Origin: Chlorokybus atmophyticus
Taxonomy: Eukaryota; Plantae; Mesostigma and Chlorokybus algae
Reading direction: 5' to 3'
DNA: 64,000 nt
Assembly (NCBI GenBank): GCA_009103225.1
Contig: RHPI01000260.1
Location: forward strand, 12,225-76,224
Part shown: positions 215-39,664 of the stretch, piece by piece
How the letters are laid out: every line of letters starts with the position of its first letter
Position numbering within the stretch: the first letter of the stretch is position 1
The notes under the pieces: model-generated
Database searches by the model: none
What the model saw: the letters and a program-made list of their open reading frames with translations, nothing else
What the model was told of the DNA's origin: nothing
Program-made: the position numbers and the translations under genes

Positions 215-700
215 TGCAGTGATTATTCAACCAAACTGTAAGTGAATAACCACTTATATGTAGGACTATGTGTGTGAGCAGAAGTGCTGTATGATTCAAT
301 TATCATTCGCGTGAAAAATCGACCAAAGGCAGCAGTGATTGTTCAACCATACTATGGGTGAATAACCACTCATATATAGGACTGTGTGAGAGCAGATATG
401 CTGTATTATTCAATCACAAATCATATGAATAATCACTTGCTAGTATGGTACATGTGCTGTTGAAACAGCTTTAGTATGTGTGAACATTAAGCCAATATGC
501 GTGTGAATAATTACTAATAAGGAGGACCTAGTGTGAGAGCAGGCGCTGTAAACATTCACGCACACAAAGTATGAATAATCACTTGGTGCCATGGTACAAG
601 TCTAGGACCATGTATACCTAAGAAGACTGAATATGCAGTTCTGTTGCGAGTGAATAACTACTCACATGTAGGAGGTTGTGTGCGAGATGGACAATTACTA
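215..700. repeat. Degenerate tandem/subterminal repeats with core (G/A)TGAATAA(C/T)(C/T)ACT
   Basis: The core recurs at about 243, 359, 424, 503, 571 and 651. Copies at ~218-300 and ~336-413 align over ~80 bp (gtgatt.ttcaacca.act...gtgaataaccact.atat.taggact.tgtg.gagcaga..tgctgtat.attcaat). Confidence 0.7.
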
Positions 701-883
701 TTCATGCCCAAAACGTGTGAATATCCATTGCTTGTATTCAGGGCATTTGGCCTGAATAATCAGCAACCGTAATAGCGACCTCTGCAGCCACGCAAGTGGC
801 GAGTTCACACATAAAACAGATGAGTATTCAGGGTAAATGCGCTGAATTTTCAGAAATTTGGGGGGTCCAGAATTACCGGTGTA

Positions 884-2772
884 TTGCGGATGTAGTTGGC
901 AGTGAATACCGCCTCCTTCCACAAACTGTCTTCCATCTTTGTGTCGTTGAGCATGGCTCGAACACGCTCCAAGAGTGTCCTGTTGAGGCGTTCAGCTGCT
1001 CCATCCTGCTGCGGGGTGTAGGGTACCGTTGTCTCGTGGCGTATGCCCTTGCTGGCGAAGAATCCCTTCAACTCCTTGTTGATGTACTCCCCTCCTGGAT
1101 CACTCCTCATTGCCTTCGTCTGATTGCCAGACTGGGTCTCCAACAAGGCCACAACTGTGCGCACAGCTCCAGCAACTTCTGACTTGAGCGTCAATGGAAA
1201 GATGATGGACAGCTTGCGGTAGTCGTCGAGGAATGTAGCAAAGTACCTGGCCCCTCCCTTCGCCACAATGCGCATAGGGCCACAGACATCCATGTGCACA
1301 AGCTCGCAAGGATGCTGACTGCTAGAAGAGGACGATGGGAATGGCATAGCATGCTGCTTTGCAACCAGGCATGGTTCACAAAGTGCGCCTGATGCATTCT
1401 TGAGTTCTTCTGTGCTAAGATGGATGCCCTTGACCATCTTCTCAGCGACAAGGCGAGTGAGGTTGACGTAGCTGAGATGCCCGAACCTTCGATGCCACAA
1501 TGTTGGCGACTCCTTGTCCTTCACCACCATGGCTTGAATGTCAATGTCTTTGGGGTGCTGCTCCACGTGGTAGAGCCCTCCCGGATCAGCGATTCCAACC
1601 ATGTGCACGACCCCATCAAGGATGACTGAGCAGCCACCCTTTCGAAATAGGATCTCCGCGCCTAAGCGCTCCGCAACCCTCACAGAGAATAGACTCGCAA
1701 TAGCCTTAGGAACATGCAGGACGTTGCGTAACAACACCTCGCGTAGTGTGTTACCAACCTTGCACTGGAGTCGTACGTTGCCAACTCCCTCAGCCACCAG
1801 TACTTCGCCACCGAAGCCCGCCACCTTGATTGTGGACGTCAGCTTCCTGTAGCCCTCCATCACCTCCTTGTTTGGTGTGAGATGACGATCGCAGCCAGAG
1901 TCCACCACCCAGAAAGCTGTGCCCGCCCTCGAACTGGATGCAGTAAAGGCGACATGTTTCTCCTTGTGTTGGTGCTCGTTGCCGCTGTTGCTGGTGCTTG
2001 CTCTAGGTTGCCCCTGTTGTTTCTTCCTACAGTCCTTCACAATGTGCCCCTTCCAACCACACCAGTGGCATGTGAGGTCTTTGTGACGAGGATTGCCTGG
2101 CTTGTTGCCCTTGTACTTCTCTTCATGGTTGCTCTTCTTTGCGTGCTTGCCGGTGTAGAAAACGACGGCATCCGCTTGCTCGTCCTTCTTCATCACCCTC
2201 TGCTCCACGGTGAGCAGCTTCGGTAGTACATCGTCCAGTGTCAGCTCCGATGACGATGTCTCCAGCAGTGTTGCAACCTCGTACTGTGCTGGTAGCCCTG
2301 CAACAACAGCCAGCACAACCTCCGTCTCCCCCATGTCGTGGCCGACGTTGATAAGGTCCGCCCACAGCTCTCTCGCACGTGCAACATACTTTGTGATGGG
2401 TTTTGCTGCCTCCTTCTTGAGTGCGCTCAGCTGCTTGCGTAGCTGCAACTTTCTGGCGTTGTTATTGGCTCTGAAAACGGCTGATAGCTTTTTTCAAGCT
2501 TGTCTACCATCTTCACATGCAGTGAGCATGGGAAAGTGATGCGGTTTGCAGTTCAACACAAGCAATGAGTGTGCTTCTGCTGAATGCTCTGACCACACAG
2601 TGTTCGCTCCTGGTAGTGGTGGTGGTGCCTTCGGATCCACATACTTCCACACCTTCTTATGGATGAGCAAGGCCTTCATCTCCACGCACCATGTGTTGTA
2701 GTTGTCGGTGTCCAGCTTTGCAATCTGCCCCTTGTTGTAGGTCGCCTCCATCTTTGTCGTGCCTGCCTTCAC
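884..2772 (-). pseudogene. Copia gag-pol polyprotein (gag, CCHC knuckle, aspartic protease, GAG-pre-integrase, rve integrase), truncated
   Basis: Motifs: KLDTDNYNTWCVEMKALL (gag N-terminus), CHWCGWKGHIVKDC (CX2CX4HX4C), WVVDSGCDRH (protease), LWHRRFGHLSY, CEPCLVAKQH, ELVHMDVCGP, MRSDPGGEY, TPQQDGAAERLNRTL. ORFs 2494-2772 and 850-2448 are in the same frame, separated by one TGA at 2494-2496. Confidence 0.93.
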
Positions 2773-2865
2773 TTGCAGTTGACACCCAAGGCTCTGCTAC
2801 CAACAAGCTACTGTAGTGTAGAACTACTATGCACACACGCTAGTCTCACACTCCTCAAGCGTAGT

Positions 2866-2879
2866 GTGGGCCCATAACC
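2866..2879 (-). promoter_or_regulatory. Primer-binding site GGTTATGGGCCCAC (half-tRNA-iMet type)
   Basis: Directly abuts the LTR CA end. Complementary to the anticodon arm of plant-type initiator tRNA (GUGGGCCCAUAACC). Confidence 0.85.
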
Positions 2880-3115
2880 TGTTGAAGGACTAGCATGCAC
2901 ATGTAGCTGAGGCAAGCATAGACAAATAGAGACAGAGCTACCGCCACCAGAGCATACACAAGACACATCACATTCATCTATTACAAGTTGTCCGCTGGTT
3001 CTTATACCAGCCAGTTACACACACGTCTACGTTTGCAAGCACTGCGTAAGCTTTACTCAGTCTTTTGACGCGCACTAAATTGTGTTGTCTTTCTTACAAC
3101 CGGAGCCTTTCAACA
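2880..3115 (-). repeat. Copia 5' LTR (236 bp)
   Basis: TG...CA termini with a 7-bp inverted repeat (tgttgaa/ttcaaca), adjacent to the PBS. Confidence 0.85.
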
Positions 3116-5980
3116 AGCTCTTACACGCTTAATATGAGTAAGTATACGCGGAGATACAAAGCAGTTAGTAAGGCTCCAGTCTGGAGTCCGGAGTCTGGTC
3201 CGACGACGCCATCTTGCTAAGTCCGGACCTAGTGCTCATCCTTACAACCTTCTACTCCTATGTGGAGGGTCGATGCTGATCGTATGTAGGAATGACTCTC
3301 AACAGTCCAGTGGCGAGGGCTCGAAGTCGATCTGTTGAGCGGGCATGGGTTGCCGCGTTTGACTGGGTGCGCCTTGCAATCGTGCGTGTAATGCCAAGAA
3401 CAACTGAATGGCCAGCTCTAATACTGCAGGTCGCCGGTAGGTGACCCCGAAGGGATGATCCCTCATCTCTGGTGCAGTGCCGGCGAATTTCATCCTCCAG
3501 CTGCTGTTGTGTGGGTTTCGGCAGCGTGTGGTACTCTGGAGGTGGTAGGGGCAAGATGCGATCATCGCGTGCCACGCGCGTGGTGCGTTGCCCCCCTGGT
3601 CCGTACGCAATGGTGGTGGGCTCCACGTTGCGTAGAACCGACGCCCAGGCGCGTTCGGCTTGTGGTCCGCGTGGCACTTGCTGTGTGACGTCAAGCGCTG
3701 GTGGCGGTGCCGTTCGAATCTCAGGAAGTGGTGCAGTGGGTGCGGCAGCACTACTGGAGGCGATGGTGGTGGCACCTGCAGCAGTCGTCGTTCCTGAGGT
3801 GGCGGCTGTGAGGGTGGCAGCAGTTGTGACCGATGAGGTCGCTTCAATAGAGGCAGGAGTGGTGGATTCACCACCCACGAATTCAACGACCACGGTTGTT
3901 GCGGCGTGGGTGCTTTCCATCACCGGGGACAGCGTGGTGCCAAGAGTGCTGGCACCTGCTGTTGTGGTCGGTGTGGACGCCGACGGTGTCGTCGACGGCG
4001 TCGTCCCAGCAGTGGTTGTGGCTGCCGAGGCAGCACCACTTGTGGCGTCCGATGATGCCGCTGTTGACGACGTGCCAGCTTCCCTACGCGCACGTCTTGA
4101 TGGTTGTACGCGTGACGGCGTGGGAGTGTCCCTATCCCGTTTTGGTGCCATCGACGCCCACCTAGCAGCATAGCAGGCTTGATAGTCCTGCTCCTTGTTC
4201 TCCTCCAGCTGTGCCACGCGCGCCATCAGGGCTGCCACTTGGTCAGCAGCTGGTGGATTGGTTGGTGCCTTTACAGCAGCAGCTTCAGCGCGAGGACGTC
4301 CCTTAGGTCCTTTGTGCTGTGGAGGGCGGCTTTTCCCTCTGTAGCCAGCTTCCTCCTTGCGGGCCCCGGCATTGTTGTTGCTGGGGTTGTGGCCACCAGC
4401 GTTGTTGCCAATGTTGCGACCACCAACGTTGTTGCTGTTGTTGTAGCCGCCAGCGTGGTTGCTGTTGTTGTAGCCCCCGTTGTTGTTGTTGTTGTTGTTG
4501 TTGTTGCCGCGGTAGCCAACAGCATTGTTGCCGTTGTTGTAGCCAATAGAGGGCCGCAGCTCTGGGAACTTGAGCTAGCATACTGTCTCCAAGAGTCCCG
4601 TCTTGTGCCAGTAGTCGCACACAAGGTTGCCGTAATCTTCGGTGCACTCCTTTTGGTAGTGGCCATGTCGACCACACCGGTGGCACAGCACTGGAGCCAC
4701 AAGGACAGCATGAGCTGACCGTTTGTCCTTGTTGTGAATGCCGTGCGGCTCTCGGCTGCGGTCCCGCCGAAGAGGCTCTGCACTTGTGCCTGCCATAGGC
4801 CGCGAGGCAATGCGGTTGGTGTCCAGCACCGCTTTCTCATACACTGCGCGCTTATAGATGGCTTGTGCAGTCTCGAAAGCTTCCTTGAGGGTGTAGCCGA
4901 GGGGCCTGCTGTAGTTCAGCGTTAGGCGTGTTTACTCACTCAGGGTGGGATCCAACTCGGCCACATACACCACTGCTGCCGCCTCCTCACTGACGATCTT
5001 GTAGTCAGTGTTTTTAACCAACCCCCTTCCAACCGCGAATACAGTCGGAGAGGGTCCTCGTTGGGCTTCCGTCGAAAACGCCTCAACTCCTCCACCTTGC
5101 TGTTGGTTTGAGGTGGGAAGGTGCGCCGGAGTGCGGCGTAGAGGTCCTTCAACGGGGAGTCCGACATGGCCGCGCCCACCGTAAGCGCGGGTGCACGCAA
5201 TGCCACTGAGCCAAGGGTGAAAAAACTGCCTCCCGCTGAAGCACGCGAGTTCGGTGTTGGTAGCAGGGGCGTACCCATCTCTAATGCTGCAGCTTGCTGC
5301 TCCTCTTGTTGCTCCCTGATGATGGCAGCGGTGCGGTTGAGTATCCTGATCCGGCGCTCGGCCTTCTTGCTTTCGATCTCTGCAGGAGTCAATGAGGCCA
5401 CTACCACCTCAACTTCTTCATTCTCTGCCTTCTCCATGGCTGCAGCTAGAGTGAGACCCGTGACTGAGGCTGGCGGGGTCGCTGCTACAGGGACAGTAAC
5501 CGATGAGCTATGCAGTACCGTGGAGGATATTGTGCTGGCCAATTCGCCATAGCCATCAATCTTATGCAACTCAGCGACGGACTTCCACACATCATGTGCT
5601 TCGTGATCAAGGTATTGAGCGGACACATGAAACGATACCTCATCTATCCAGTCCTTGCTCTTGAGAGCTTGCTGTCGCATCTTGGAGTGGAACTTAATGA
5701 TGATCTCGTCAAGTGAGGTGGTGCCAGGGCGTACGGAGAAGCGTAGGGAGTTGGTTGAGCTGGAAGGCTCCATCTCCTCGTCGTCACTGTCCGACGGTGG
5801 TGGAGATGCTCGTTGTCGAGGAGTGGAGTGAGAGGAGGTGAAGCCGGAGACGGGGCGTGAGCCTCTGCTGCTACGATAATCGCTCCCTTCACTTGCGCGC
5901 TCGTAGGTAAGGTTGGAGGCCGGGCTCCAGCTGTTGAGGTTCCCTTCTTCTATTGGCGAGAAAGGGGTGGGCCTGCTCAT
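3116..5980 (-). mobile_element. Gag-only LTR-retrotransposon-like element (decayed long gag ORF followed by a purine tract and LTR start)
   Basis: ORF pieces 5980-4940, 4844-4575 and 4238-3258; the last two share a frame with one TAG between them. Contains gag-like EELRRFRRKPNEDPLRLYSRL, CHRCGRHGHYQKEC plus a second degenerate knuckle, an Asn/Gly-rich and a Thr/Ala-rich tract. Right after the stop: AGGAGTAGAAGG then TGTAAGG (starting 3246). Confidence 0.55.
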
Positions 5981-6633: not shown

Positions 6634-9600
6634 CTACGCGCGGTGCCTATGTAGGCTATGGTCATGAGCTACTTTAAAGGCATGACCTAGCTTCTGGCCA
6701 GTGACGCGCGCGAGTCGCCATGCTGGTAAGCCGGGCGAGGGTCTCGCTGTAGGCATGCCCGATGACGACTGGCATGCCCAGGCGATAGGCATGACAAGAC
6801 TAACATAATGCCGGATGGTTTCCTCAATCACTTAATTGGCGTGTCCTCTCTGACCATCTATCTGTAAATGGTACGCTGTGCTCATGTTCTGTTGAATCTT
6901 TAAGAAGCTGCGTAGCGACTTCTAAAAACTGTCGTGCGACAAGGGACAATGTGAACCATTTTTGTTAAACAATCCACAAAAACTGCAACCGTAGTGTGAC
7001 TCAATGCTGTCTCTGGGAGCTCAGCAATTAAGTCCATACTCACATTTTTTCATTTGCCATAAAAGACCGGCAATGGTCGCAGCAACCCCGCGAGTATCTA
7101 ACGTAACGGCTTGTCACGCTGACATTTGTCAAACGTGTCCACATACCGCTTTACGTCAACAGGCAACGATGGCCACCAATACAACTGCTGCGCTGCCTTA
7201 AGAGTCTTGCGATTGATAAAGTGCCCAGCGTATGGTGGATCGTGTACATCAGCTATGCATTTTACACGCAACTCAGGCATGGTCTGGTATGACAAAACTG
7301 GTGCCCATACAATACATGTTGTCTCATATGTCAAGCTTTTGCATCTTGTCCCCTAACGAGAACCGTGGGTTCAAAGCATATCGTTGCACAGTAGCTTGCA
7401 CAACTCATCATTAGTTGACAATGTACCGCGCGTCGCGAGCAATTGCGCACTCATACCTGCCAGTAATGACGGACAGCGACTCGCTCTAAGTCGGACTCAA
7501 AGGATTAGCAACATAGGTTTTACCTAGCCAATATACCCACTTAAAGGTAAACCGGGACAGAAACTCATTCCAGCGAGCTTGCCTGCATGACAAGTTTTGC
7601 TGTGTTGAGGAATACACCAATGAATTACGATCAGTCACCACTTTGACTTAATCCCCCTCAACATAACATCGCCATGTTTCCGGAGCATGTACTATACCAA
7701 GCAACTGTTGCTTAGTGGTGGTGTAATTTACCTCTGCTGGGATGAACTTCCTACTCTCATAAGCACATGGTCTGCCATCTTGCAACAGTGCTGCACCACA
7801 CCCAAGGGTGGACGCATCGCTAACCACAATGAAATGCTTGTCCCTGTTTGGTAATGCCAACACTGGAGCTGAAGTCAAAGCTAGCTTAACATGTTGCATA
7901 GCAGCTTCTTGTTCAGCTGTCCACAAGTGTGCGGTGCATCTTTTCGCAACACTTTTGTCAAAGGCACCACTGTGGAGTACCTTATTATGACCTTGCAAAA
8001 GTAGTTTGCCTATACCAAGAATAATCGCAGCTGATGGATATTCTTGGGTTGAGGCCAACCCCTTACAACTTACACTTTGCGAGGGTCAGGTTTAACACCC
8101 GCATCGCTCACAATGTGCCCCACGGATGGCAACTCCGTCTTGCAGAAGTTACACTTTGCAAGATGAGTAAACAAGCGATGTGCACGCAGCAAGGCGAACA
8201 CCGCTTCCATGCTGCTCATGATCTTCATTGGTTTTACTGAAGACAATGATGTCATCCAAGTAAACCATATACTTGCAAAGTATGCCACCGAAAATCTTAT
8301 TCAATTTTTTCAAATACTGCGGGCGCATTAGTCAATCCAAAAGGTAACTCTTTGTATTAATAATGGCCTGAAAGTGTTTAAAATGCTGTCGTGTAAACAT
8401 GAGAAGGATGAACCCGGATTTGATGATACCCACTTGTTAGGTCCAGCGTGCTAAAGTACGCACTTTTCGACAATTTTTCAAACACATCATCAATCCGGGG
8501 CAACGGGTATGAATTCTTTACCATGATCTTGTTTAAAGCACATGAATCCACACATGCGCAGTTTTCAATGTGTTTCATCACAAACAAGGTCGGCGCGCCA
8601 AAAGGTGAAGAACTCGATTAATCAATCCCTTTTTTAGTAACACCTTTATTCAAGTTTCCATTTCCCCCCTTTCTTGGGGGCTTTGGCTATATATAGGCCG
8701 AAACGGAGGCTCACTATTAGGAATGAGTGGTATTACGTGTCCGACACCTTGATCAGGAGGTAAGCCTGGCAACTCATATGAGAACACATCTTGGTACTTC
8801 TCAATCATTGATGATGACTGCAACATGATGATGACTGCAACATGATCTGTACTGCCCGGCATAAAGTCGTTCGACCACGTCAAGTTTACCAGAATAGCCG
8901 GTGTATTTTTGCGCAACGCACGTTTCATTGCAGTGCAGTGAGTAGCGCAGCATCGGATTGCTTGTGCTCCAAGCTATGCGCCCCATTCACAAACAATGTT
9001 ACAAGCTTACAACCTTTCTTTACTATGCACAAGCGTGCGCCAGCAACCAATGTCTTTTGAACGTTTTCCTGCCATTTTTGCCCAAATACCACATTAACAC
9101 CTGACATGTTGATGGATACCATTATGAAAGTCAGAGTGGCATGATAACTACCAATTTTTACCTTCAGTTTTACTTGCCCTTTCGCTGGCAACGCACCCCC
9201 CGCACCGGTAGCTGAAAAAGAAAAGCAAATGCTGAGGGTTTACACGTTATCTTGTTGCGCACAACCATTGTTCTTAAACGAAATTCTGTGTTGCACCAAT
9301 GTCAATTAAGAACGAACTGTTTACATCCTGCATTGTGCCACTGAATGTCCACAACAGAGGTACCACTCGTCCATGAAATGTAGCAAGAGTCCATGACTAA
9401 TGCGAGGGGTTGATAAATGTTGCTAACAATCGGCATTATCCCTGTTTTACGCTTGCTAAAATGCTTCAACACAGATTCCCCCACCCCCCCCTTTAAGTAT
9501 GCTTTAACCATGAGCCATAATACTTTGGCATCATTTCCACTATACTCAAGGTTATGTGCTTATTTTAAAACTCAGTCAATGCAACACATCCGTAAGCATG

Positions 9601-15246: not shown

Positions 15247-16328
15247 CTGAGTTGAACCAACAAAATGGCTGACCCACCAAATGTCAAACGCATAAACACG
15301 AACCCCAATGCAACACGACGCTTTAGGGGGATGCTTGCGCTGACCTGGACATGCTTGTGGACATGCAACTTGCATCCAAAAATAGACCGTGGATTATATC
15401 GCACACAGCTCAATGCGTTGTCAAAGCGTGAAACAATCTGTGCATCAGTGTAGCTGCACAATTCTCTGCCAAGCTGCCTGCCGCACTTTCCACAGTGTGC
15501 AACTTCAGACGCAGGCATGAGAGCAAAATGCTACGCTCTTACAACGTCAAACCATTTGCATTTGACTGCAACTGCACCTGAACTTGAATATGTGCGACTT
15601 CTCATCTGGGTGAGAGCCCCAGCCTGGTGGCTTCTCCGGCGTGGCCATCCCCCAGGCCACCGGTAGGCCCACCACCAACTTTCACGGCGGATGGCTCCTC
15701 CGCCGCACTCAACTTCTACCTCCTCGACTGCGGCCGCCCCGGTCCCGCAGCGAGCCTCATCCTGGCCTTGCCCGGCCTGGGATGGCTCACCTCTCCTACA
15801 CGGAGCAGTAGACTGCACCTTCCTCTAATGCCGGTACACTGCACGCACCACCACCAGGCTTCGACCCGCATCCGCTCGACCACCTGCGAACGCGGTTCAC
15901 CGACCCTTAGTGCAACAATCTCGATCCTGTTCGGTTCGCACCGACCTGCAAGCAGCATGTGCGTCTGCTTGAAGCAGCAGCAGTGCTGGTGGGCAGGTTG
16001 GTGGTGGTGGTGGTGGCGGCGCCGTCCGGTGAGGCGGTGGGGGCGCACAGAGGCTTGCTGATTTTGCGTGTATGTGTGATTAGTCGATCTTGTTGTAAAC
16101 GAAGAGATATGTTGCCTAATAGTGGTGTGGATGCAGTGCATGTCAACTGGGTAACTGCCACGAGGGCAGGCAGGTAGGTGCCTGTAGGTGGCTTGCGGTT
16201 GTGCTGGCTTGAGCTGGCCCGCAAGTGGTAGCAGAACTGCTTGTTTAAGGGGTAGGAAGATTTATTGCAGATCGACCATTGTGGGGATTGGCGGTAGTTT
16301 CAGTCGGAATGCCAATGGACTGGTGACG

Positions 16329-19300
16329 ATGGCTTCTGCCCAGGCCCTGCGAGCCTGGGCATGCTTGGCGCAAGCTCTGTTGCTTGCTGTTTTATGCTTG
16401 ACGCGACCGGTTCAAGGAGCTTTTCCAGGTATGCATGTATGGTTTCCTTTCTCGTTGCCAAATCGCTTGCATGTTGTCACGAAGCATCGCGTACAGTGGT
16501 AGAAATGCATTGCGTAGGTGATGATGATTGTGAGGCACTTGCACACCGCTCATTGCATATGTATGTTGCAAGCTCAAGCTTGGGAAGAACACGGCTTGTT
16601 AGAGACATTTCTTGACGGTTTGTTGTGTGGAATACTGCGTGCAAACAGTCACCCTGGTTCGACAAGCCCATGCCAGGTTGGCTTGATGTGCTCGTCATAG
16701 GTTCCTGGAGTAGTAGCTGCGTGTGCACGCATGCTATACAATGTACATGGACAATCGAGTATGTTGCAACGACCAACCAGCTTTCCTTGTTGCTCAGATG
16801 ACGAGCCAATTCTGCATGCCACTTACTACTCAGCACAAAAGGGCTCCAGTTTGTATGTTAACGAACCTGTCATCATCGATGCCGAATGCAGCATGTTGTA
16901 TGGAAACTCCTCTTCCCAAAACAACTCTACCCTGGTTTTCTGCTTCAACACTGGAGGCCAACCGGCTAGTTCTGGTGATGCCGTTTGCAACAACGATGGC
17001 CGCAGGACCTGGACTTATGACACACCTGGTTGGAAGTCCGTGTGGGTGAGCTGTCGCAAAGTGTCCAACATGGCTTTGACACCAGATGACGCCATTTTTG
17101 GAGGTCCGTCCACAACTCTGCGACTTTACGTGCAGCCGAAGCAAGGTGATATGCACCCCATGTGCGATCAAACGCTAGGTGTTGTGAGACATGGTTACAG
17201 TTTGCACAATGCCAGACAGACTATGCGTGAACGCCGTAGCGGGCAAGAGTGTTCACGTTGACATACATGACTGGCAGGTTGTTTTCGTTATGGGGCAACT
17301 ACTGATCTGCAAACAACGTATTCAAGCGGCTTCAGCGTTTCCCTTCCTTCTTCTGCTCACACAACAATGTACCTGCGCGTGTACGACCCGCAAGACCCTA
17401 AAACCGACATTGAGCTGTTGAGCCAGCAGTTTGCACAGTCAGGAGACTACCCCAGTGTGAGATTGCTGCCTTTTGATGCTTACCTGCGGCGCGATTGGCC
17501 TGGAGGCATTAGTCACACCGGTATCCTTGAGGATCGGCCGGCAGGCTCAATCAACCTCGCTTCAAACCCGGCATGGGTGAGATGCAAGCAAGTGCACATT
17601 ACTCAATCTCGAGCGTCTTGGCAATGGCAAGGCACTCAGTTCTGTATTGGTTGGTGGCAGGACCCAGTCAGGAAGGCATGGGCAGTTGACATGGAAAGCG
17701 GAGCAGAGCCTAGCTCTGTGATTGCTGTGATGTACTCCTCTGGCGTGACCATCATGGGATGCAGCGTTGAACTCACTCGCATACTTGTCTACGTTCCTGC
17801 CTTTGCGTCCAGCATGCCACAACCAAAGGTTTGTAAGCGCTTTCTTGATTTGGAAGTCATTTATTGCTGTTGTTGACGATATGGCCAAACAGGAAAACAG
17901 AAACCTGCATTCTGTCAATGGTGCGTTGGTCATTCAAGGTCACAGCTCATACTTGCTTGCGTTAGTGACTTTGGATCAGTTTCAGAAGGACGTTCCATTG
18001 CTGTCAGGACCGATACACATTTCGTGCAGCACGTGCTCACCTGGTGCATCCGTGTTCGCACTCACCAAGACATCAACCATACTTGCAACCAATAATTCCT
18101 GGGGAGCCTCAACACAAGCAGTTGACGTGAATGCACTTTTTAGGGAAGCAGCAACAGACATGGTGGTACACGCTGCTGCCATGCTCTGCAGCGATGTTCT
18201 GTTGCTGACCAGTGGAGGTACACAAAACATCTTGTGCAGGACGTGGAGAGTGGATTGGGCTTGCTTTCAGCATGAGTCTGATGGCTGTGACACACCATGC
18301 CGCTTTTGTGTTGTGTCACAGGCCAACAGCATCAGCATATGTAGCGTACCCACTTCTGCTGAAGGCGTCACGCAACTGTCAGTTGTTGTTTGCAAGCATG
18401 AGCAGGCAACTTACCATCTGCTTGTGGGCAGGACTTGTCAGATGGACACCAAAGGCACAGACTGCAACACTGATTGATGGTCTCAGCCTGCACAATGTTG
18501 CCTCAGCTGCCATCTCCGTGCAACCCCCACCACTGGGAAGCGCGGATTCACACATTTATGTCTCAGCATCAAGCAGTGGTGCCATGCAAGTCTACTGGAG
18601 CAATCGCGATGATCTGAAGACGTGGACAAAGTCCAAAGTTGCAGATGCGGCCAGGGTAACCTCACTGCAGGACTACTACTACAACCGCACGTTACACCTG
18701 GTCTCTGCCTCAGATGGAACCCAAGCGCAGGTTTGTGCTTGCGCAGGATCACATACTCAATGTCCAGGCAGCAGTCTGCAAGGCCGCTCAATCATATGCT
18801 GTTGCAGATCTGGCAGGAGGATAACCACAATGAACCCACCCCCAAGCTGCTGTATACTTTTTATCTGGATGCGAAGATCGTGGGCATAAGCATGCCTTGT
18901 TCCGGTGCTGACCTGTAAGCAACTGTTGGCTTGTACACGTGGCAGCCCTCAACGAATGGCATGGTCTGATGACTTAAGGTCACCCATTGCCAACATGCCA
19001 GATGTCTTACGCTGCTTAATTACCTACACAGGTATGCGTTTGGCAGTGCTATTTGGCATGCGCCTGACACAAATAGCTCAATACGCCTGCTGCAATCGCT
19101 GCCAGCCCTAGCTGTGCACATTGCATGCAGTGCAGGTGGTGGCGTAGCGTTCCTGACAGGTACAGGCATACTGTCTACATGAAAATACCCTGAGGCCACT
19201 TAACAGCTGATGGTTGACCATGATGCCGAGCAGCATTGTAGCAGCACGCTGAAATAAGCGTGCATGCCAGATGCGGGGCAGGTATACTACAGCAGGCGTG

Positions 19301-22242
19301 GCTTCAACCAGCTGGCAACAATCTCGACTCCAACAGCATATGCGGCAGATAGCTCAACACCTGTGGCATTTGGCATCAACTTTGACTGGCAAGGCGAGCT
19401 TCAGTTTCTTGAGGTTCGGCTGTCGGTGTTTCTGCTGTAGTGGTAACTGTGGACACAGTAGTGTTGCTTCTGAGATGATGCTGGATGCACAGGTGCGAGC
19501 ATGCAACACAAGTGCTGCGGCAACTACCGATGAGAACGGACAGAAGGTTGTTGTTGCGAGTCTGCCTATGCTGCACAACACGTCATTGTGCCTTGCAGCG
19601 ACCACACTGCCGCTTGACTCAGAGCTGCGAGCATCTGATTCGTCAACTGCTGTTGCTCTTGCACCACGCGGCTTCCATGCCTCAGTGTTGTCGGCCATCG
19701 GTAATAGTTCACAGGTGAAACTGTCTGGCCTGCCTGGTTCAGCGATTTGACTGCCACTGGCAGTTGCCAGGGCCTGAGCTCTGTGCTGCAGGTGCCATTC
19801 GAGGCCAGCAGTCTCGGGCGCATAGTGGTAACGGACATGGTTGAGCCAAGCGGCGCACTGGTTGCTGACATACAGGAAGCAAGTGTTGTTGTGGAGCTGC
19901 CTGTGAACACAGTCTTCAAGGCTGCAACAGGTGCACAACGCTGCGTGACCCTTGATGATCACCGTTCAATTGATGATGACCCAGTGGTGTGCTGCAGTTG
20001 CGGACTCTCCAGCGCAGCAACAGGAATTGACCGTCTCTGCTGTTGAAGTTAATATTGGTAGCGCCTCCTGGCTCATATTGTCGCCATATGTGCCTACAAC
20101 TGTTGCACTCGCAACAGCAACAGGTCCCATCAATGTGAAGTCAACGGCTGTATCCAGTTCAGCAGGCTGGCTTTTCTCCGATGTTGGCAAGACAGCAGTG
20201 ACTGGGCAGAACAGCGCGACGGTCACTCAGTTTGTGAACAGCAGCCACGCACAGGCGATTATCTCTGCTCAACTGGACAGCAAGCACTTTTCTGTGGCCG
20301 CTGGGCAATGGCAGCTGCTGGACTTCCGTGCGTATCGAGAGGAAGCCAGGACAAGCTCTGAGCAGCAACTGCGGGTGTACGGCGATCCTGAGTCCAGCAA
20401 ATACTTCACTGCAAGCTTGTCTGATGGTTGGATGAGGTTCCGCAGCACCGACTACAGCAAGATCCTTGCTGTCGGCACCGGGTGGGGCTTCATTGCACGC
20501 GTCATGAACAGCTCAGCAGTGTCCGTATACATTCGGCAGAGTGTGGCGCCAGGCACTCACTCTGCCGGAAACTGGAGCATGTACTCAGGTGCTTTGATTG
20601 AAAAACTACAGCGCTGCATCAGCTCATCGCTGTCAGTCATAGATTGACTGCCTCAACTGTTGCAGATATCAGCCCTTCGCTCACCCTAAAACTCTTGTAT
20701 TGCAGTTGAGCCTGGGCAGCAGTGCAATGCGCTTCCACACACAACATGCAGGGCTCGAATTTGGCATCTGAAGCTGCCTCCTTGTGGCTTGGTGAGCTTT
20801 CTGGGGCCCCCTCTAACTGGTGCCGACACTATCTTCATGGATATGCAAGATGCCGCAACCGCAACAGTGATAATAGACCCACCAACCAGTCCCGTTGACA
20901 TAACCATGGCCAATCCGCAGCTTCTCATCTACTCCGCCAGGTACGCCTGTGCAGCAAGGCTCAACACAATATAGGTTGTTCTGCATCTTGCGTACATCCT
21001 ATGTATGCATAGTGAGTGGTTAGCGTATGCTTGCTCCCTATCGAGAGCATAAACACAGGCAGTCACTCAAGTTAATGTATGGTCCACGGCAGAGACAAGA
21101 TAGCCAGTGCAGATGGCATTATTGTTGCCAACAAGACGGTCACGATGCTGGCGAGGAGGGCTGCCGGACTTGGGTTCCTGTCAATACAACCACAAAGGAC
21201 CAGCTTGTTGTGCCAAGCGACACAGCTCGCAGTGCACGTCCTTGTTGGATGTCCCGAGACAAAATATATCACTCCGGTGGGCTCATTGAGACCATTTTCA
21301 AATCAGAACGGGACCGTTACACCGCCTGTCAAGTTGATGCCCATCCCCACCAACTACAGACCACCCTCGCGCTTCGGCAAAGGCGTGCCGACATCCGCGA
21401 ACATATACCATGCGGACCCTTCCCAATCCCTACACCTCACCAGGTTCAAAGTCTCACGTAACACGGGGCGCTTTCAGCAATGTGCCAGCAAAGCTAACAG
21501 GGCAGGTTGCGGATGCAATGCCACACAAGTAATATGCCAGTTACCAAGCGAGTCTGACTGCTGCACACAGGTTAGCATATGTCGCAGGTCACGTGCTGTC
21601 CATTATGAGAGTTGAGAAAACTGCAGGTGGACACCCCACCCAACTCAAAATCTGTGTGGCAGGCAATAGCATTTTACATGCAAGATGTGCTGGTGCCTCG
21701 TTTTCTTATCAAGCAGGCAAATAGGGCGGATCGAATCCTGCCACTGCCATACCAACTTGTGGAAGTGAATGGTCGTGTAGACTACTGCTTTATGAATGCC
21801 ACCGGCATAGACTGCAAAAACGCCAGCGAGGCAAGCGCTTTTACTGCATGTGCACATCAACGAGTGCAGTGTTCATGCTTTGTGCGCCGTTATCGTACCA
21901 GCTGCGTGCACATAGCAAGGTCAATGCGCTTTGCATGTCGATCAAGTGCTGACTCGCAACTCTCGAACCCAACTGCAACAGGTGCAGTCTGTCATCATGG
22001 ACGGTAGCAACCCATACGGCATCAAGTTTTTCGGGACGGAGCTGTACAATTTTGAGGTGACGGTGTTGCCAACGCATTCGTTCTGCAACCTTACCACGGG
22101 TTTTGCCGTTTGGGTCACGCATCCACCTTTGAAGATCACGCATTGGTACTTGACAGTTTCTCTGATCGTCACCGTGATGGCGCTCGGCATGCTTGCGGTA
22201 TATGTTCTGTTTGTGTACCACTATGGTACACAATTCCGATAA
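16329..22242 (+). CDS. CATSPERB: CatSper auxiliary subunit beta-like type-I membrane glycoprotein (multi-exon)
   Basis: Signal peptide MASAQALRAWACLAQALLLAVLCLTRPVQG, a large ectodomain rich in N-X-S/T sites, and one C-terminal TM helix (YLTVSLIVTVMALGMLAVYVLFVY). Motifs PTNYRPPSRFGKGVPTSANIYHADPSQ...FKVSRNTGRFQQCASKANRAGCGC...SDC (21337-21570), VPRF...LPYQLVEVNGR (~21690-21780) and GTELYNFEVTVLPTHSFCNLTTGFAVWVTHPPL (~22030-22135) match the CATSPERB C-terminal region as I recall it. Internal exon structure not fully resolved. Confidence 0.82.
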
Positions 22243-22690
22243 CAATGCTGGTACACATCCTTGTAGCTTGTTGTATATAACAGATATAGCAATTTTTATG
22301 TTATGAGCCAATGCACCGCGCAATTGGTGTACACTGTTGGCCAGGCACTGATTGTCAATTGAGTGGTATCACCCAACAGAAGTTGACGCGGGTATTGTGA
22401 GGATAAGCGTCAGCTGCCCGCGTTCATGTGGCACTGTCTGAGCCACCACATTATCGACTTCCAAGGTCAAGGGAGTAAACGTTGTTTATGTGCTTGGGTC
22501 TGTGCCTTAGTAGTGGATGGCGCATTCTGGGACAGATGCCCACAGAATGCACTGGTTTGCACATGTGAACACAGGACCGGCACACTGTAAAGCGTTGCAG
22601 ATATAGAATGACCAGGACCGTGCAACCAAGAATGCAATCAACCTACTGCAACCAAACCATAAAGGCACAATGCTGTAACAACTGCATACT

Positions 22691-24564
22691 TCACGTCCGA
22701 CCGTTGGTGCTAATTACTGGAAAAGGCGTGACGCCCATGCCCCTAACAACAGCTGGCCTTGAGCGCATGCGCTCCACCCATCTCATGACATAAACATAGC
22801 TGGTCAGTCTGAGCTCCTGCGTGGCGCCATAGGGCTCGTCCAGCGCGACTAGCCATGGGTATGTGGCCATGTCGGCGATGGTGTACTCGCCGACAATGTA
22901 GTCCCGCCCGTCCGACAGGCGGCGGTCCAGCACGCCTAACAGCCGCTGCACCTCCAGCGTCGCCTTCTCACGTGGGTACGTGTCCAACACGCTCCCACGC
23001 GCGTACTTGAAGTACACGCCGAACTGGCCAAAACAGGGGCCAACACCTCCCACCTGCATTTGATGTAAAGTTCAGCGCGCATACGTAATACTGTAGCCTA
23101 AGAGCAAGGTTGCGTGCATTTCTCATAAGGAAGATATGAACTGCACGAGCTCGTGGATACCTGCCAGAATAGCCACTGCATAGTATCAGAGCGTTTACGA
23201 GCGTCCTTTGGTAGAAACTTCCCGGCTTTGTCCGCAAGATACACCAAGATCGCACCAGACTCGAATATAGAAATCGGCTTACCACCTGGTGGAAAGCTTA
23301 TTGTTTGTCTATCATTGTCAAGTTGCATTCTTAGCTCCACAAGCCATTGGTGTTGGGCACATCAGCAATGTCTTGAATTACTGTCTTGCAATATAAATAC
23401 CCTCTTGCACGTATGGTTACAAACTTCCCCGTCGAGAGCAGTGTGCAAACTGCTCACCTGGCCCGTCAGGATCGGTGATTGCTGGTATCTTGTTGTTGGG
23501 TGATATTTTCAGAAAGTCAGGATGCCGCTGCTCACCTTTCGTTATCTGCACACGCGAAACGATGGCGGCCACATTATCTCAAGCATTGGATACTGCAACA
23601 GAATGGTATTCAACAGCACGCACAACAGGCAGCAAACAGTCAAGCACAGGAGCATTGCAGCAGTGTGTGCTTCTCACACTGCTGCAATGCAATGCAACGA
23701 AATTTAAGTAATCACGCAGACTTGCAACGCACACAGCACAGCTCGGGTGCCATTACACACACAAACAACAGCGCTCGTCTTTGACGCATGGCAATGAATC
23801 GGGTTTTGGTGGTGGTGGTAGGGGCGGAGGGGTAGTCTAACGCCCGGTGCTATNNNNNNNNNNNNNNNNNNNNNNNNNNNNNNNNNNNNNNNNNNNNNNN
23901 NNNNNNNNNNNNNNNNNNNNNNNNNNNNNNNNNNNNNNNNNNNNNNNNNNNNNNNNNNNNNNNNNNNNNNNNNNNNNNNNNNNNNNNNNNNNNNNNNNNN
24001 NNNNNNCAATGCTAGCAATTGTAGAAAAGTAGGAGAAGAAGTTTACCATACGTTGACCAAGTGCGGTTCGTAAGGGATGCCCATTTCCTCCAGCGCTATG
24101 GCAACCTGGCAACACGTAACGCACATAAATGTTGGGGCTCAGAAGCTGTCACAAGCATGCTTGCATGCACCATTGTGGCAAAACAACACACCAACAAGCA
24201 TGACTTGCAACCAGTCAGCTCAAACAGGCAGCAGACAGACAACTGTCCAGTCTGCTCAAACCACTTGTGCGCGTAATACAAGCGCACGACAATACTTTAC
24301 ACAACCAACCTTCTGTCCATTGGGTGTGGCAATGGAGAACAGCTGGATAGGTCGCTTGAAGCCTTTCTGCTGCTGCTGCACAGGGCTGGTGGCTATTGTG
24401 CTGCTGCTTGTCTGCACTTCTCTGCTGACTGCAGCAGTGGCGCCCCCCTCAGCCTGCTTGCTTGAAGTTGGAGGCGGAGGCGGACGCCTGTCGGAGCTGG
24501 CGCTAAAGCGGCCCAGCAGGTACGCAGCGGCGGCGGCCGCCGCCGCCAACGCGAATGCCGCCAT
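22691..24564 (-). CDS. Glutathione S-transferase, Nu/Ure2p-like class (YfcG/YghU-like)
   Basis: Spliced: [14 protein letters not shown]|[18 protein letters not shown]|[29 protein letters not shown]|[18 protein letters not shown]...QWLFWQ|[10 protein letters not shown]...[12 protein letters not shown]...RPAVVRG. One intron contains the N gap 23854-24006. Confidence 0.93.
23854..24006. other. Assembly gap (153 N) in a GST intron
   Basis: Run of N. Confidence 0.99.
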
Positions 24565-34304: not shown

Positions 34305-37300
34305 TCAACTTCCCTTCGCACGGTAGAACGCCTGACCACGGGCAGGACCACCTCGACCACCACGAGCATTCGAGGCCTGGCCACCCCGAGTGTTTGGAAA
34401 AACAGCAGCCGGCACTGGGGGCTGTACCGCCTGGCGGAACGCGTTGAGGCTGAAATCCCCGCCGCGCCCACCTTTTGCAACTGGTCTGGTATTGGTGATG
34501 TGATTTGTGCCGCCTCGTGGCTGGGGTCTTTGTAGTATGGCTGCAGGTGGCGACGTGCGATGAGGTGGGAGGATTGGCGCGGGCTGCGGGCCCCTATGTG
34601 ATTCATTAAGCGAATCACTACCTCCTTCCAGAGACAATATCGCTGCAGCGGCCTGGACCGCAGCAATGTGGTCTGCAGGCATGAGACCTGCCGGGTCTTG
34701 AACCTGCAAAGGCAAATGTTGGTGCATGTTACAAGCAGACCATGCAACACATTTACAGAACAACAAAACTGCATGTGCAGCTGACTTTACTGCTCGACAG
34801 GTACCTTTCGTTCAAACACCTGTAGCAGCCGCTGCCGAAGGTAGCACAGCTGGTGTGCAACCGCGGTTGGCAGTGTAAAGTGCAGCCAGTCATCCACAGA
34901 GATGAGTGACATGGAAGCATCAGAGGCATCGGCTTCCATCATGGGCGTATCATGTCCGGTGTCAGGGCTGCTCGGTGTAATGGTGAGCTTGGCTGCGAAC
35001 AGTATGAAAGGGTGGGGCTGCACGAGCGTGCTGCTGCGGACATTAAGCATGGACTCCCCTCTTGTCAGCTCATCAAAGACGAGCAGGCTGGCTTGTTGGT
35101 CCGCTGCGCTGTTGGCTTCCAGCTTTATGTTCACGGAGTGCTGATGGATGCGCACCTTTTCGCCCTTCTTCGTGACCATGAACGTCCTCCCGCTGTTGCT
35201 CGTCACTTTGCCCACGAGTGGGTACGTGCCAGCCGCGAGAACGGCCCGCACCAGAGTGCGGTCCTGGCAGTTCTGGTTCACGGCCTGAAGGTAGCGAGGC
35301 ACGAGTTGGAGATGCTGCATCTCTTGAGTCAGCTGCTCCCTCGTGTCGCTGATCCACTGCATGCTGGCGCTTGATAAAAAGTTTTGGTTGCAAAACATCT
35401 GATGACAAAGCCTGTGTCAGTCCGCAACATAAACCACACAGTATCAAGTACATATGTACACAAGCATACCTGATCATGACCGCGACTTCTAGCATGCACC
35501 CATTGCTCAAACGCAGCAGATATTGCCAGCTGGTCACTGTTGCCACCATACATGTTGGACATCTTTTGCCTTGCTGCGATGGCCTGTCGCCTCTGATCAT
35601 TACTGATGGGCAGGACAAATGGGTCTTTTTGCGAGTGTGCGCAGGCTGCGGTCAGGAGGGGATCAAAGCACTGGAAGATGACCGCAAACAGCAGCATTTT
35701 GCCAATGCGCGGGTGTAGAGGAAGGGAGGCTAGGTGCCTGCCCAGATCTGTCAGTCGCTGCTTGCCGTCAATGGCACCAATGTCCTGCAGAGTGCTCACG
35801 GCGTTTTCTACAGCTTTGCTGATGGGCGGTTCGACCGCCTTTGCTAGGAACTCCTCAATGCGAGTGTGGGGTGCCAACAATTTCACCTGGTGGACAGAAA
35901 CACAGTCGTGGTATTCTGCGGCATGGCAGTGACAGCGACACAAGCAAGGTGCCCTGGTCAGCTCATGCAGTTATCATTTCTTGCTACTACAGGAGACAAG
36001 AAAGATTATCCTAATTGTACATAACCAGGGGCAGGAGGGTTGAGGTACCTGCAGGCACAGCTCTTCCAAAGGAGTTCGCTTCAACTCAGGTTGATTGAAT
36101 TCAGCGTGCGCTTTGCTTCGGGCTCTGGAGTACATATGGTAGCAAACACCTGGCCGTACTCGACCAGCACGCCCTCTGCGCTGACGCTCGTTAGCTTTGG
36201 AAGTCCACGTCATCTGCAGGGTGCTGACGTTGGTGTACGGGTCATAATTTTTCTCCTTCTGCTTGCCGCAATCGATCACAAACACCACGTCGTCTATGGT
36301 GATGGCTGTCTCCGCTATGTTAGTGGCAAGAACAATCTTGCGCACGCCGTGCGGCGGCCTCTCAAACACGCGCTTCTGCTCTGCTGTCGCCACTCTCGAA
36401 TGCATCAAGAGGATAGAGAATTTGCTGCTTTTGAAGGTTGAACTCGATGCCAAGTTGTCACGCAAGCGCGACATCTCATCCCAGCCAGGGAGGAAGACAA
36501 GAATTGCTCCATCTGGTGCTAAATTGGCACCTCCCTGTGCAGCCTGTGGAAACAACCACTGCTGAGCTCCTATGGCAACAGCTGGCATAATCATCCACTA
36601 ATTGCCAAACAGAGGACACACAGCAAGGCTAAATTGCATGCCATAGTTACACAATACGTGCATGCTGATTTGTGTGCACATCAATCCAGCATCAGAATCT
36701 TGCCCTAACCTGCCAGCCGCCACCGCATATGTACTCCAGCAACATCTCAATCAGATTCAGATCAACTTCGTCCATGTTAGTGGATGCCTGAGGCAATTGC
36801 AACGTGTGTCAGCAACGGTTGCAACCCTGCCCTTGCTGCATACCGAACTGTGTCACGCAGCAGCACCTGGTATTTGCTCAAGGCGTCAGCAACATTTGCG
36901 GCTCCATGCGATCGCTCAACCTCTGCAGCATGCTCCTTGACCATGATGTGCGCCTCTTCCTGCCCGAATATGTACGCCCAGTCTGTAGCGCTTGAACCTA
37001 CATGCATGCCGGTTGTTAGACACTGCGACGTCGAGAGGACTTGAACCCACCACAACTTTACGCCATATGCAGTGTAGATTCTCACCGTTGTAAGCCTTCA
37101 ACGATACATCAACTCCTTGACTGAGAAGCCAGGCAACCACCTCGCCCTTCCCCTTGCCAGCAGTAACCATCAACGCTGTAGCTCCAGTTTCGGTGTGCTG
37201 ATAGTCCAAAGGAGATCTCCCTCCAGCAAGACTGCCAGACTCCAGCCTGTCTTTAACGCCGGCGAGCAACTCATCAAAGTCAGCATCACGTGCCTGCACA

Positions 37301-39664
37301 CAAATGGCGGGCAAAGGCACGGATATCACTATAGATGCAGCATCGCCTTTGTTAGACGTAATAAGTGTGCGCGCGCGAGCATGTGCAAGTGGCCGTACCT
37401 TGAGCCAGGCATTCTCGAGGAGAGCATCCATAGCGGCATCGGACACAACCTCCGAGGTCCCCTCGCCTTGCAGGTACTCGCCACTGGCGGCTTGAGGGAC
37501 GCTGCCCACAAACCCTGTTCGCGCTAGCACATCTTCTAAGAAGTACGATCGTACCTGCATGCATTGTGACCTCGTACCCAACTCGGACAAGACAACACAA
37601 CAGTGCCTATGAGACACATGGCGACCATGAAAATGCCAAATAAGTACCAAAGGCACTTACCGGATGGGTAAAGCCTGGAACGCGCACTATGGGGCAACCT
37701 CCAAAGTAGGACGAAAACAACTCAGCATTGAGCGTGGCACTCATCAACACCAAACGCAGCGAGGGCCTCCTCTTAAGAAGGTCCCTAAGCACAATCAGCA
37801 TGAAGTCTGCAAACCTATCGCGCTCATGTATCTCATCAACGATGATGTGTGTGACACCCTCCAACGGGTCTCTTCGCACTGGCTTGACGCCGGGCAGCTG
37901 ATGGTCGTGCTGGCTTGTAATTGTTAACTTCCTCAACAGTATTCCGTTGGTACAGAAAGTAAGAACAGTGTTGGATGACACCTGCGTATCCAAGCGAACC
38001 TGCATCCAGCAGCATTGAGTCCTCTGCTGGGTAAGGTGACAATGATGCATTTCGACATGTGCCGGGTTGGGTAAGCTAACTGCATGTGGTGTTGACTTCT
38101 AGCAGCACCAATACAGCCCTACCTGATAGCCAATGCTGCTATCTGGTTTCCCAACAACTTCACCAAACTCCGTTGCCACCCGCTCAGCCACAGAAATGGC
38201 GGAGATGCGGCGAGGCTGTGTGCAGATTATTTTGGCTGGCATCTGTCGGCTCCACGAGTCTTCTAGGATGTACTGAGGAATTTGAGTAGTTTTGCCACAA
38301 CCCGTTTCGCCGGCAATCAGTATCACCTGATTGCTCTGCATAGCCGCGAGCACACTGTCACGCATGGCATAGATGGGGAGAGCTCTGCGCGCTTCGTCCA
38401 GCTGTAACAGATGCCGAGACCCCTGAATCTTGGCACGGTGTTTGTGCCACTTGAGGGCTATTCTGCCACGCTCCTCATCTGAAAGCGGAAGCGGGCCAGC
38501 CTCCGGCCCGCTGGATGAGTTCTGCTCCAGCAACCCATCTTCTTCACCGTCGGTGGCATCGCAGTCCATGTCATCGGTGGATGGTGAGATTGCAGCTGAA
38601 ACAGCTGCCAGCTCTGCAGGAGTGGGTGGGACACGCGAAAAGAGGTCGTCGAGCTCGCGCCTTGTTTGCGCTGAGACGCTCAACTCGGTGGCGTCGCGCG
38701 TATGCACTGCCTTATTCCGCTCTTTAAACACGACAACATGCCTGTCTTCTCCCTTGCTGCGGACATGTTCACACTGTTGTTACCAGCTGGTGCGTTGGGA
38801 TGCATGCATGTATGGTATGGGACAGCATGATCAATCAAGCAAGGCTTGTACCAACCCATAGCTCTTGGAGGAGAACCCATACTTCTTGCATTCAGAGTGC
38901 ACCACTGCTCGGTCGTCATTATTAAGACCAGGCTCGAAGCTCAATTCTGCCAAGCACAACACAGGCTCGGTAAACGCTCAATGCACACGACGCAACGCTT
39001 CCATAGTGTCATAGTTGTCACAACCTCAAGCTGGCAGCGAGCTAAGCACATATCAAGCAACAACATGCCAGCATGCAAACCGCTTGTTGCCAACAGTACA
39101 TAACGCATTCACCCTTCCAACGGTGGACTGGACTGCTACCTACTGCTTGCCTCGACTGGACTGCTGACACCTACTGCCATGAAGTAAACGCAGCAACAAA
39201 CAACTGAGTTCTTTATCCCCATTTCCGTTACTGCATGCAAGCGCCCTGAATCAACGCTGGTAGAACAAGCTGTTAAAGTGTCAAGTAAACGCCGTGATTC
39301 TTTATATATACTTGAGCAGTCGCAAAGCCCACAGCTTGACGAATGGCTGATCAGATTGGAATCTAGCGATCGCTAATCAATGTTTTTTCGTTCACCACAA
39401 TACTTGAGATGTGTGTCTACAACTGGTGGTAGTATTGCTGAGTATAAATATTGGTGAATTGCAATGACAGTGCAACGCTCATGTGCCTGTCTCATCGCTC
39501 TGCTGGAATCGCTCCAGACGTTCAGAGATAGAGATCCTCGCCGTCTCTGACACCGGCCTGAGGCCAGCAGGAAACATTCCGCCCGCAACGCCGCCCCCTC
39601 TATCTCCACGTACGCCCCGGCCACCGCCGCCGCCGCCCCGGCCGCCACGCGGGCCGCCGCCCAT
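34305..39664 (-). CDS. DExH6: DExH-box RNA helicase with ankyrin insertion (plant DExH6/HVT1/NIH, YTHDC2-like architecture)
   Basis: RGG N-terminus; [50 protein letters not shown]; ANK repeat [19 protein letters not shown]; [44 protein letters not shown]; HA2 [21 protein letters not shown]; OB-fold VRIHQHSVN...FDELTR. The 3' stop position is approximate. Confidence 0.92.

Follow-up and report, generated by a model that had tools for sequence, protein, structure and literature searches.

The 64,000-nt stretch analysed here (the window) comes from the streptophyte alga Chlorokybus atmophyticus (contig RHPI01000260.1, positions 12,225 to 76,224), and its plus strand carries at 16329-22242 a multi-exon gene for a protein of the CATSPERB family, the beta-type auxiliary subunits of the CatSper Ca2+ channel. 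A first-pass annotation made from the letters alone had placed a CatSper-beta-like gene of about 5.9 kb here, and its coordinates are exact, since in the spliced mRNA the first in-frame ATG of the open reading frame (ORF) stands at 16329 and the stop codon ends at 22242. Public sequencing runs, three of which (X1, X2 and X4) belong to one study and one (X3) to another, were aligned to 16290-22289. Run X1 yielded a single spliced contig of 4327 nt, positions 237-4240 of which correspond to 16290-22289 with zero mismatches, and fragments of the transcript were also matched from runs X2 and X3. Alignment of this contig to the DNA, with intron joints shifted within repeated bases to the canonical GT/GC..AG, placed 15 introns (14 GT-AG and one GC-AG) between 16 exons. 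The coding sequence (CDS), assembled from RNA as the annotation had proposed, is an intact ORF of 1305 amino acids (aa) plus stop, and the strings PTNYRPPSRFGKGVPTSANIYHADPSQ..., FKVSRNTGRFQQCA, VPRF...PYQLVEVNGR and GTELYNFEVTVL...SFCNL, which the annotation had quoted, all fall in plus-strand ORFs where it had put them. The transcript and its coding exons lie as follows.

16054..22376, plus strand: transcribed region, its ends inferred from the 236 nt 5' and 87 nt 3' of the aligned part, assuming no further intron
16329..22242, plus strand: CDS, from the RNA joints and translation
16329-16428, 16798-17145, 17278-17576 and 17661-17828, plus strand: CDS exons 1-4
17986-18217, 18432-18730, 18808-18914 and 19032-19159, plus strand: CDS exons 5-8
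19271-19413, 19493-19714, 19792-19930 and 19998-20588, plus strand: CDS exons 9-12
20706-20940, 21093-21570, 21663-21830 and 21982-22242, plus strand: CDS exons 13-16
21831..21981, plus strand: intron 15, GC-AG, donor GCAAGC, its junction backed by X1 and X3 and thus by two studies

In one library the full-length transcript reached a word depth of about 79, and the sister libraries of the same study gave small fragments of it or none. Full-length assembly in one library, with little or nothing in its sisters, suggests that expression of the gene depends on condition or stage.

The protein is also represented in public data. When exon 14 was searched exhaustively with HMMER against 1.84 billion representative proteins at E <= 0.001, a 1283-aa protein matching the query with 100% identity was recovered. 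This protein (P0001) is EukProt EP00898 Chlorokybus atmophyticus P000425, equivalent to JGI Chlat1 model Chrsp12S02047, which already bears a precomputed PF15149 tag in public data. The public model departs from the RNA at two places: it has 2 extra residues at intron 4 (17826-17986), and at exon 15/intron 15 (21663-21982) it lacks 24 aa, a false upstream donor being used instead of the GC-AG intron. The omitted stretch includes LVEVNGRVDYC, which fits the family consensus L.ELN.R.D.C. Because Chrsp12S02047 drops this family-conserved block, the RNA-based model of 1305 aa is the better of the two.

The translated product is a predicted type I membrane protein with a signal-peptide-like start, a large ectodomain, one C-terminal transmembrane helix and an 8-aa tail, and it contains 18 N-X-S/T N-glycosylation sequons and 29 cysteines. 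The signal peptide, sequon-rich ectodomain and single C-terminal helix described in the first-pass annotation are all present by hydropathy and sequon count. From end to end the chain follows the full-length plan of CATSPERB, with signal peptide, N-terminal domain, 7-bladed propeller, head, immunoglobulin-like (Ig-like) domain, stem, one transmembrane helix and a short tail. These regions map to the DNA as listed below, the Ig-like and stem region containing the best conserved block of the CATSPERB family.

16329..16418, plus strand: signal-peptide-like N-terminus, aa 1-30, with a hydrophobic core at aa 6-24 (hydropathy 1.98), then ...RPVQG followed by AF
16419..18000 including introns, plus strand: N-terminal ectodomain region, aa 31-310, with little sequence conservation; predicted beta strands of mixed confidence; phmmer aligns aa 18-386 to a Cyanophora protein (P0039)
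18001..19630 including introns, plus strand: seven-bladed beta-propeller, about aa 311-654
19631..20827 including introns, plus strand: middle or "head" region, about aa 655-966; sub-threshold Pfam CATSPERB_head match, E 0.00036-0.005; also spanned by the structural alignment to CATSPERB
20828..22134 including introns, plus strand: Ig-like and stem region, about aa 967-1270; CATSPERB_C E 2.2e-31; phmmer alignment to 7eeb_E residues 865-974 and 1011-1081
21352..21561, plus strand: signature block NYRPPS...YHADPS...QCA...C.C...SDC, aa 1091-1160
22144..22215, plus strand: transmembrane helix, aa 1274-1297, hydropathy 2.51, aligned to the mouse CATSPERB transmembrane helix
22216-22239, plus strand: 8-aa cytoplasmic tail

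Assignment to the CATSPERB family

Profile search against the CATSPERB families, which the annotation had suggested as a check, gave a significant match of the public protein P0001 to Pfam PF15149 (CATSPERB_C) over its C-terminal 200 residues (109.6 bits against a cut-off of 27, E 2.2e-31), and exon 14 alone scored 81.1 bits. Sub-threshold matches to CATSPERB_2nd and CATSPERB_head follow one another in the correct order along the protein. When all PDB sequences were searched with phmmer, the only significant matches were to mouse CATSPERB, as 7eeb_E (E 7.8e-21) and 9ubw_E (E 6.8e-21), with the delta and epsilon subunits at E of about 0.1 in the same search. The mammalian motifs that the annotation had given proved essentially right: in the phmmer alignment mouse CATSPERB reads NYRPPS..G..IP...N.YHADPS...SK.TG.YKQCA...R..C.C...SDC and then GSELFHF.V.V....SFC.L...F.IYV...PL, in the same order. 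A family alignment of 41 members has 15 invariant columns, and the Chlorokybus protein has the family residue in 15/15. These include the N, Y, R, P and S of NYRPPS together with P1103, Y1109, C1134, C1143, C1145, D1159 and C1160 (numbering of the RNA-based model), so that NYRPPS, the tyrosine of YHADPS, five cysteines and the aspartate of SDC are all kept.

For comparison of folds, residues 84-1283 of P0001 (the public model) were folded with an alignment of 40 long relatives. The predicted structure (mean predicted local distance difference test, pLDDT, 73.1; predicted template-modelling score, pTM, 0.62) is nearly all beta with one long terminal helix (model residues 1166-1199). A comparison with the beta subunit of the mouse CatSper cryo-electron microscopy structure had been proposed from the sequence, and a Foldseek search of the PDB ranked CATSPERB first: the top two matches are both mouse CATSPERB chains (E 7e-44 and 2e-42; template-modelling scores 0.48 and 0.54), and the alignment runs over about 1270 columns, essentially the entire chain. 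The paralogous subunits followed at E 1e-20 (gamma), 2e-20 (epsilon) and 3e-15 (delta), with unrelated propeller-containing receptors ranked below them. A language-model feature search (Atlas) likewise placed CATSPERB clusters first (score 0.78, by the tool's own account a lead only), and the matching AFDB clusters are CatSper-family proteins whose organisms are masked.

Because both the PDB sequence search and Foldseek put CATSPERB first, and the structural alignment covers about the whole chain, the protein is a CatSper auxiliary subunit of the beta type from end to end and not just in a shared C-terminal motif. By the same sequence and fold comparisons it is closer to beta than to gamma, delta or epsilon. 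The gene, its transcript and its membership of the CATSPERB family are matters of observation, and the claim that a true host gene of a green-lineage alga encodes a CatSper-beta-like subunit is borne out by profile, pairwise sequence, structure and RNA.

Family distribution, descent and genomic surroundings

The search with exon 14 matched 148 of the 1.84 billion representative proteins. About 38 of these are labelled, and they include animals (e.g., Nematostella), the ichthyosporean Chromosphaera, the glaucophyte Cyanophora and metagenomes. Labelled fungal matches are of chytrid grade (Polyrhizophydium, Podochytrium, Chytriomyces, Gonapodya and Rozella), and labelled protist matches are Thecamonas, Diphylleia, Gefionella, Aduncisulcus and two "Eukaryota sp." isolates. 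Other green plants number 0 among the roughly 38 labelled matches; since most of the 148 carry no label, absence of the family from other green plants is not proven. A word-indexed homology search with the conserved C-terminal region returned only the protein itself, the index being too insensitive for the CATSPERB family. With the RNA-based protein as query, the best full-length match was a 1426-aa protein of Cyanophora paradoxa (EukProt; P0039), found by phmmer at E 1e-76 with N-terminal parts included, and this is also the relative with the highest full-length identity (28%). The phmmer alignment to Gefionella spans aa 145-1294, and one environmental protein is likewise aligned over nearly the whole length. 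None of the genes neighbouring the Thecamonas and chytrid orthologues is CatSper-related.

Trees were built from the C-terminal region (57 rows) and from the full length (60 rows). The animal clade is strongly supported (Shimodaira-Hasegawa-like approximate likelihood ratio test, SH-aLRT, 99), the fungal clade has SH-aLRT 96 in the C-terminal tree and 89, unstarred, in the full-length tree, and Chlorokybus lies outside both. In each tree it sits on its own long branch, weakly joined to environmental sequences. Approximately unbiased (AU) tests on the C-terminal alignment gave p 0.32 for grouping Chlorokybus with Cyanophora, 0.27 for attachment to the animal stem and 0.40 for attachment to the fungal stem, and because they reject none of these three placements, the tree supports no claim of vertical descent or of a deep position.

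Intron positions lend independent, though weak, support to descent from a common ancestor that had introns. The phase-0 intron 14 (21570/21663) falls in the same alignment column as the intron after aa 1094 of a protein from Chytridiales sp. JEL0842 (P0006, locus L004), three residues past the invariant SDC, where it separates SDCCTQ from AIAF in Chlorokybus and SDCINR from VQRV in the chytrid. The chance of one such exact coincidence is, by rough estimate, 15 x 11 / (1100 x 3), or about 0.05. No exact common intron position was found in comparison with Nematostella or Thecamonas; one Nematostella intron stands 4 columns off Chlorokybus intron 6, in a badly aligned part.

The closest relative over the C-terminal domain is an intronless 1133-aa ORF at 1688-5089 of contig L002 (JGI metagenome 3300060724), with 35% identity there and 47% over exon 14. 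A viral origin of this contig, whose ORFs are tightly packed, was considered and rejected: its GC is 61-74%, it bears ankyrin and RNase H genes, and it resembles a eukaryote with high GC and few introns whose genes were predicted by a prokaryotic gene finder.

Pfam scans of the large ORFs of the window found no further CatSper-like gene. The rest of its recognisable content is of the kind usual on eukaryotic nuclear scaffolds and comprises the following.

850-2448, minus strand: copia-type long terminal repeat (LTR) retrotransposon ORF (gag, pre-integrase, integrase core), upstream of the CATSPERB-like gene
7648-8058, minus strand: separate reverse-transcriptase RNase H piece, also upstream
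22691-23059, minus strand: glutathione S-transferase C-terminal domain exon, convergent with the CATSPERB-like transcript, from whose 3' end it is about 300 nt away
34787-38731, minus strand: DEAH-type helicase ORF pieces (Helicase_C, OB_NTP_bind), adjoining ankyrin-repeat and AAA-like pieces, all of which may be one large multi-exon gene
45285-47029, minus strand: Tc5/pogo-type DDE transposase, split by a possible frameshift or intron into two overlapping ORFs (HTH_Tnp_Tc5 and DDE_1, then DDE_1)

Proposed function and rival explanations

Together the beta, gamma, delta and epsilon subunits make up a canopy above the channel pore (PMC13674862), and CatSper-beta has been lost along with CatSper1-4 across animal lineages (PMC2572835; PMC5362262). 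Chlorokybus forms scaly, biflagellate zoospores only occasionally, and sex is not known in it, core meiosis genes being present (PMC7027972). We propose that the Chlorokybus protein is probably an orthologue of CATSPERB, serving as the beta subunit in the canopy of a CatSper-type Ca2+ channel that lies in the membrane of the zoospore or gamete flagella. The proposal is made because conservation in the algal protein is highest in the stem and transmembrane helix, adjacent to the membrane and channel, because the zoospores are biflagellate and because the family has this known role; assembly with a pore, the flagellar location and any current are steps that we infer. The transmembrane helix would pack on the voltage-sensor domain of a CatSper-type pore subunit, as it does in sperm. 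In the 7EEB structure, each auxiliary transmembrane helix reportedly packs on one voltage-sensor domain, that of beta on CATSPER4. The ectodomain would join gamma- and epsilon-type partners in an extracellular canopy above the pore, needed for channel assembly and stability. Such a channel, lying in the flagellar membrane of the biflagellate zoospores or of as yet unseen gametes, would admit Ca2+ and alter the beat. The gene itself would most likely descend vertically from an early eukaryotic CatSper complex lost by nearly all other green plants. Whether Chlorokybus flagella hold a complete working machine, with pore, a beta/gamma/epsilon canopy, EFCAB9, theta and tau, in zoospores or gametes is a further claim on which we are evenly balanced.

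Several points weigh against this view of the gene. The strong sequence match is confined to the C-terminal quarter; in the Pfam scan the CATSPERB_1st and Ig-like domains went undetected, and CATSPERB_2nd and head lie under their cut-offs. The confidence of the structural model is moderate, and several of its loops are of low confidence. The deep contig comes from one library only, with traces elsewhere, and the "RNA" label of the libraries is a program's guess. Finally, the deep phylogeny does not demonstrate vertical descent.

The alternative that survives best, which we nevertheless regard as unlikely, accepts a true CATSPERB homologue but holds that it no longer serves a CatSper pore and has been repurposed, whether as a protein of the cell surface or scales with an adhesive or receptor role or as a helper of another channel such as one of the four-domain type. 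Its generic modules, the beta-propeller and Ig-like domains, give lower-scoring matches to integrins, plexins and sortilin-type receptors as well, and extra PKD domains in some relatives point to a plastic architecture. An independent role of beta is argued against by the animal record, because there the subunit disappears whenever CatSper1-4 do (PMC2572835; PMC5362262), and the block kept best in the alga is the stem and transmembrane segment that touches the channel in mouse.

Far less probable is a foreign gene, whether on a contaminant contig or acquired recently by horizontal transfer, with a chytrid, protist or animal as donor. The family is otherwise not known in green plants among the labelled matches, the nearest neighbours in the trees are environmental sequences, and the AU tests are compatible with attachment to the animal or fungal stem, all of which a foreign origin could accommodate. 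The first-pass annotation had taken host-style introns as an argument against contamination, and the RNA confirms fifteen spliceosomal introns; in addition, the gene and its flanks are alike in GC content (0.51-0.53 for the gene), the gene is listed in the Chlorokybus gene catalogue, and its transcript appears in runs of two studies with the same organism label. Identity over the full length is at most 28% to any known relative, the protein nests in no sampled clade, and its best full-length match is another archaeplastid, Cyanophora. With 15 introns, flank-like composition, a transcript in the runs of two studies and no close donor, contamination or recent transfer is very unlikely. Just as improbable is a decaying relic, transcribed yet non-functional: the uneven expression across libraries and the lack of known sexual reproduction, with zoospores occasional only (PMC7027972), would suit it, but the ORF of 1305 codons is intact over 16 exons with canonical splice sites throughout, all invariant family residues are kept, and signal peptide and transmembrane helix are intact. 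The canopy subunit of a CatSper-type channel remains our preferred reading.

Significance and comparison with known systems

Reviews state that plants lack CatSper (PMC5406480; PMC6660944), and the idea that CatSper is older than animals has already been published (PMC5362262; PMC5406480). The Chlorokybus genome paper surveyed flagellar genes with Chlamydomonas queries only (PMC7027972), and surveys of that design would miss a CatSper system. Our literature search found no paper naming both CatSper and Chlorokybus and none describing the CATSPERB-family protein of Cyanophora; the sole paper pairing CatSper with Cyanophora makes no claim on the complex, and the report of CatSper in Cyanophora mentioned in the first-pass annotation was not confirmed from the literature. 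Family and fold are already known, and because the gene model is public and already tagged PF15149, this is a member of a known family and not a new kind of protein; what is new is an RNA-supported, structure-checked CATSPERB orthologue in Viridiplantae, together with a corrected gene model. CatSper is usually viewed as the channel of animal sperm, and a beta subunit in the earliest-branching streptophyte lineage extends the family to green plants. Together, the Chlorokybus protein and its full-length Cyanophora relative put this auxiliary subunit in Archaeplastida, supporting an origin of the complex before a deep eukaryote split followed by massive loss, and Chlorokybus zoospores are a place where canopy subunits can be tested outside animal fertilisation. 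If the complete machine exists, the CatSpermasome would have been assembled in the ancestor of Archaeplastida, animals and fungi, near the last eukaryotic common ancestor, and lost toward all other sampled green plants, and Chlorokybus would be a plant-lineage organism in which to study the "sperm" channel.

Chlamydomonas CAV2 is a four-domain flagellar voltage-gated Ca2+ channel that provides green-algal Ca2+ entry for the switch of beat pattern (PMC11621555). Its cellular task is the same as that proposed here, whereas its architecture is unrelated, being one four-domain chain without CatSper-type canopy subunits.

Mouse CATSPERB (7EEB chain E; chain E of the CatSper dimer 9UBW) is co-linear with the algal protein over ectodomain and transmembrane helix, as judged from sequence and from the predicted fold. 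Even so, identity in the structure-based comparison is no more than about 14-18%, and the algal chain exceeds the mouse one by about 200 aa. The mouse subunit serves sperm, whereas Chlorokybus is a streptophyte alga with zoospores, and its protein is known here from gene, RNA and model. The gamma, delta and epsilon subunits (7EEB chains F, G and H) have the same plan of propeller, Ig-like domain, stem and one transmembrane helix as the Chlorokybus protein, the last 80 residues of which show weak similarity to Pfam CATSPERD-E_C. Their fold matches, however, are at least 20 orders of magnitude weaker than those to beta, and the beta-specific NYRPPS block is present in Chlorokybus.

The non-animal proteins with CATSPERB_C (Cyanophora, Podochytrium, Chytriomyces, Gonapodya, Rozella, Thecamonas, Diphylleia, Gefionella and Chromosphaera) belong to the same family over their full length as the Chlorokybus protein, to which their identity is at most 28%. 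Some non-animal members have N-terminal PKD domains, as at 5109-9638 of contig L005 (P0027) and in Polyrhizophydium (P0159), unlike the mouse subunit and the Chlorokybus protein. The labelled relatives include no green plant, and all those named in this list are, like Chlorokybus, organisms with flagellate stages.

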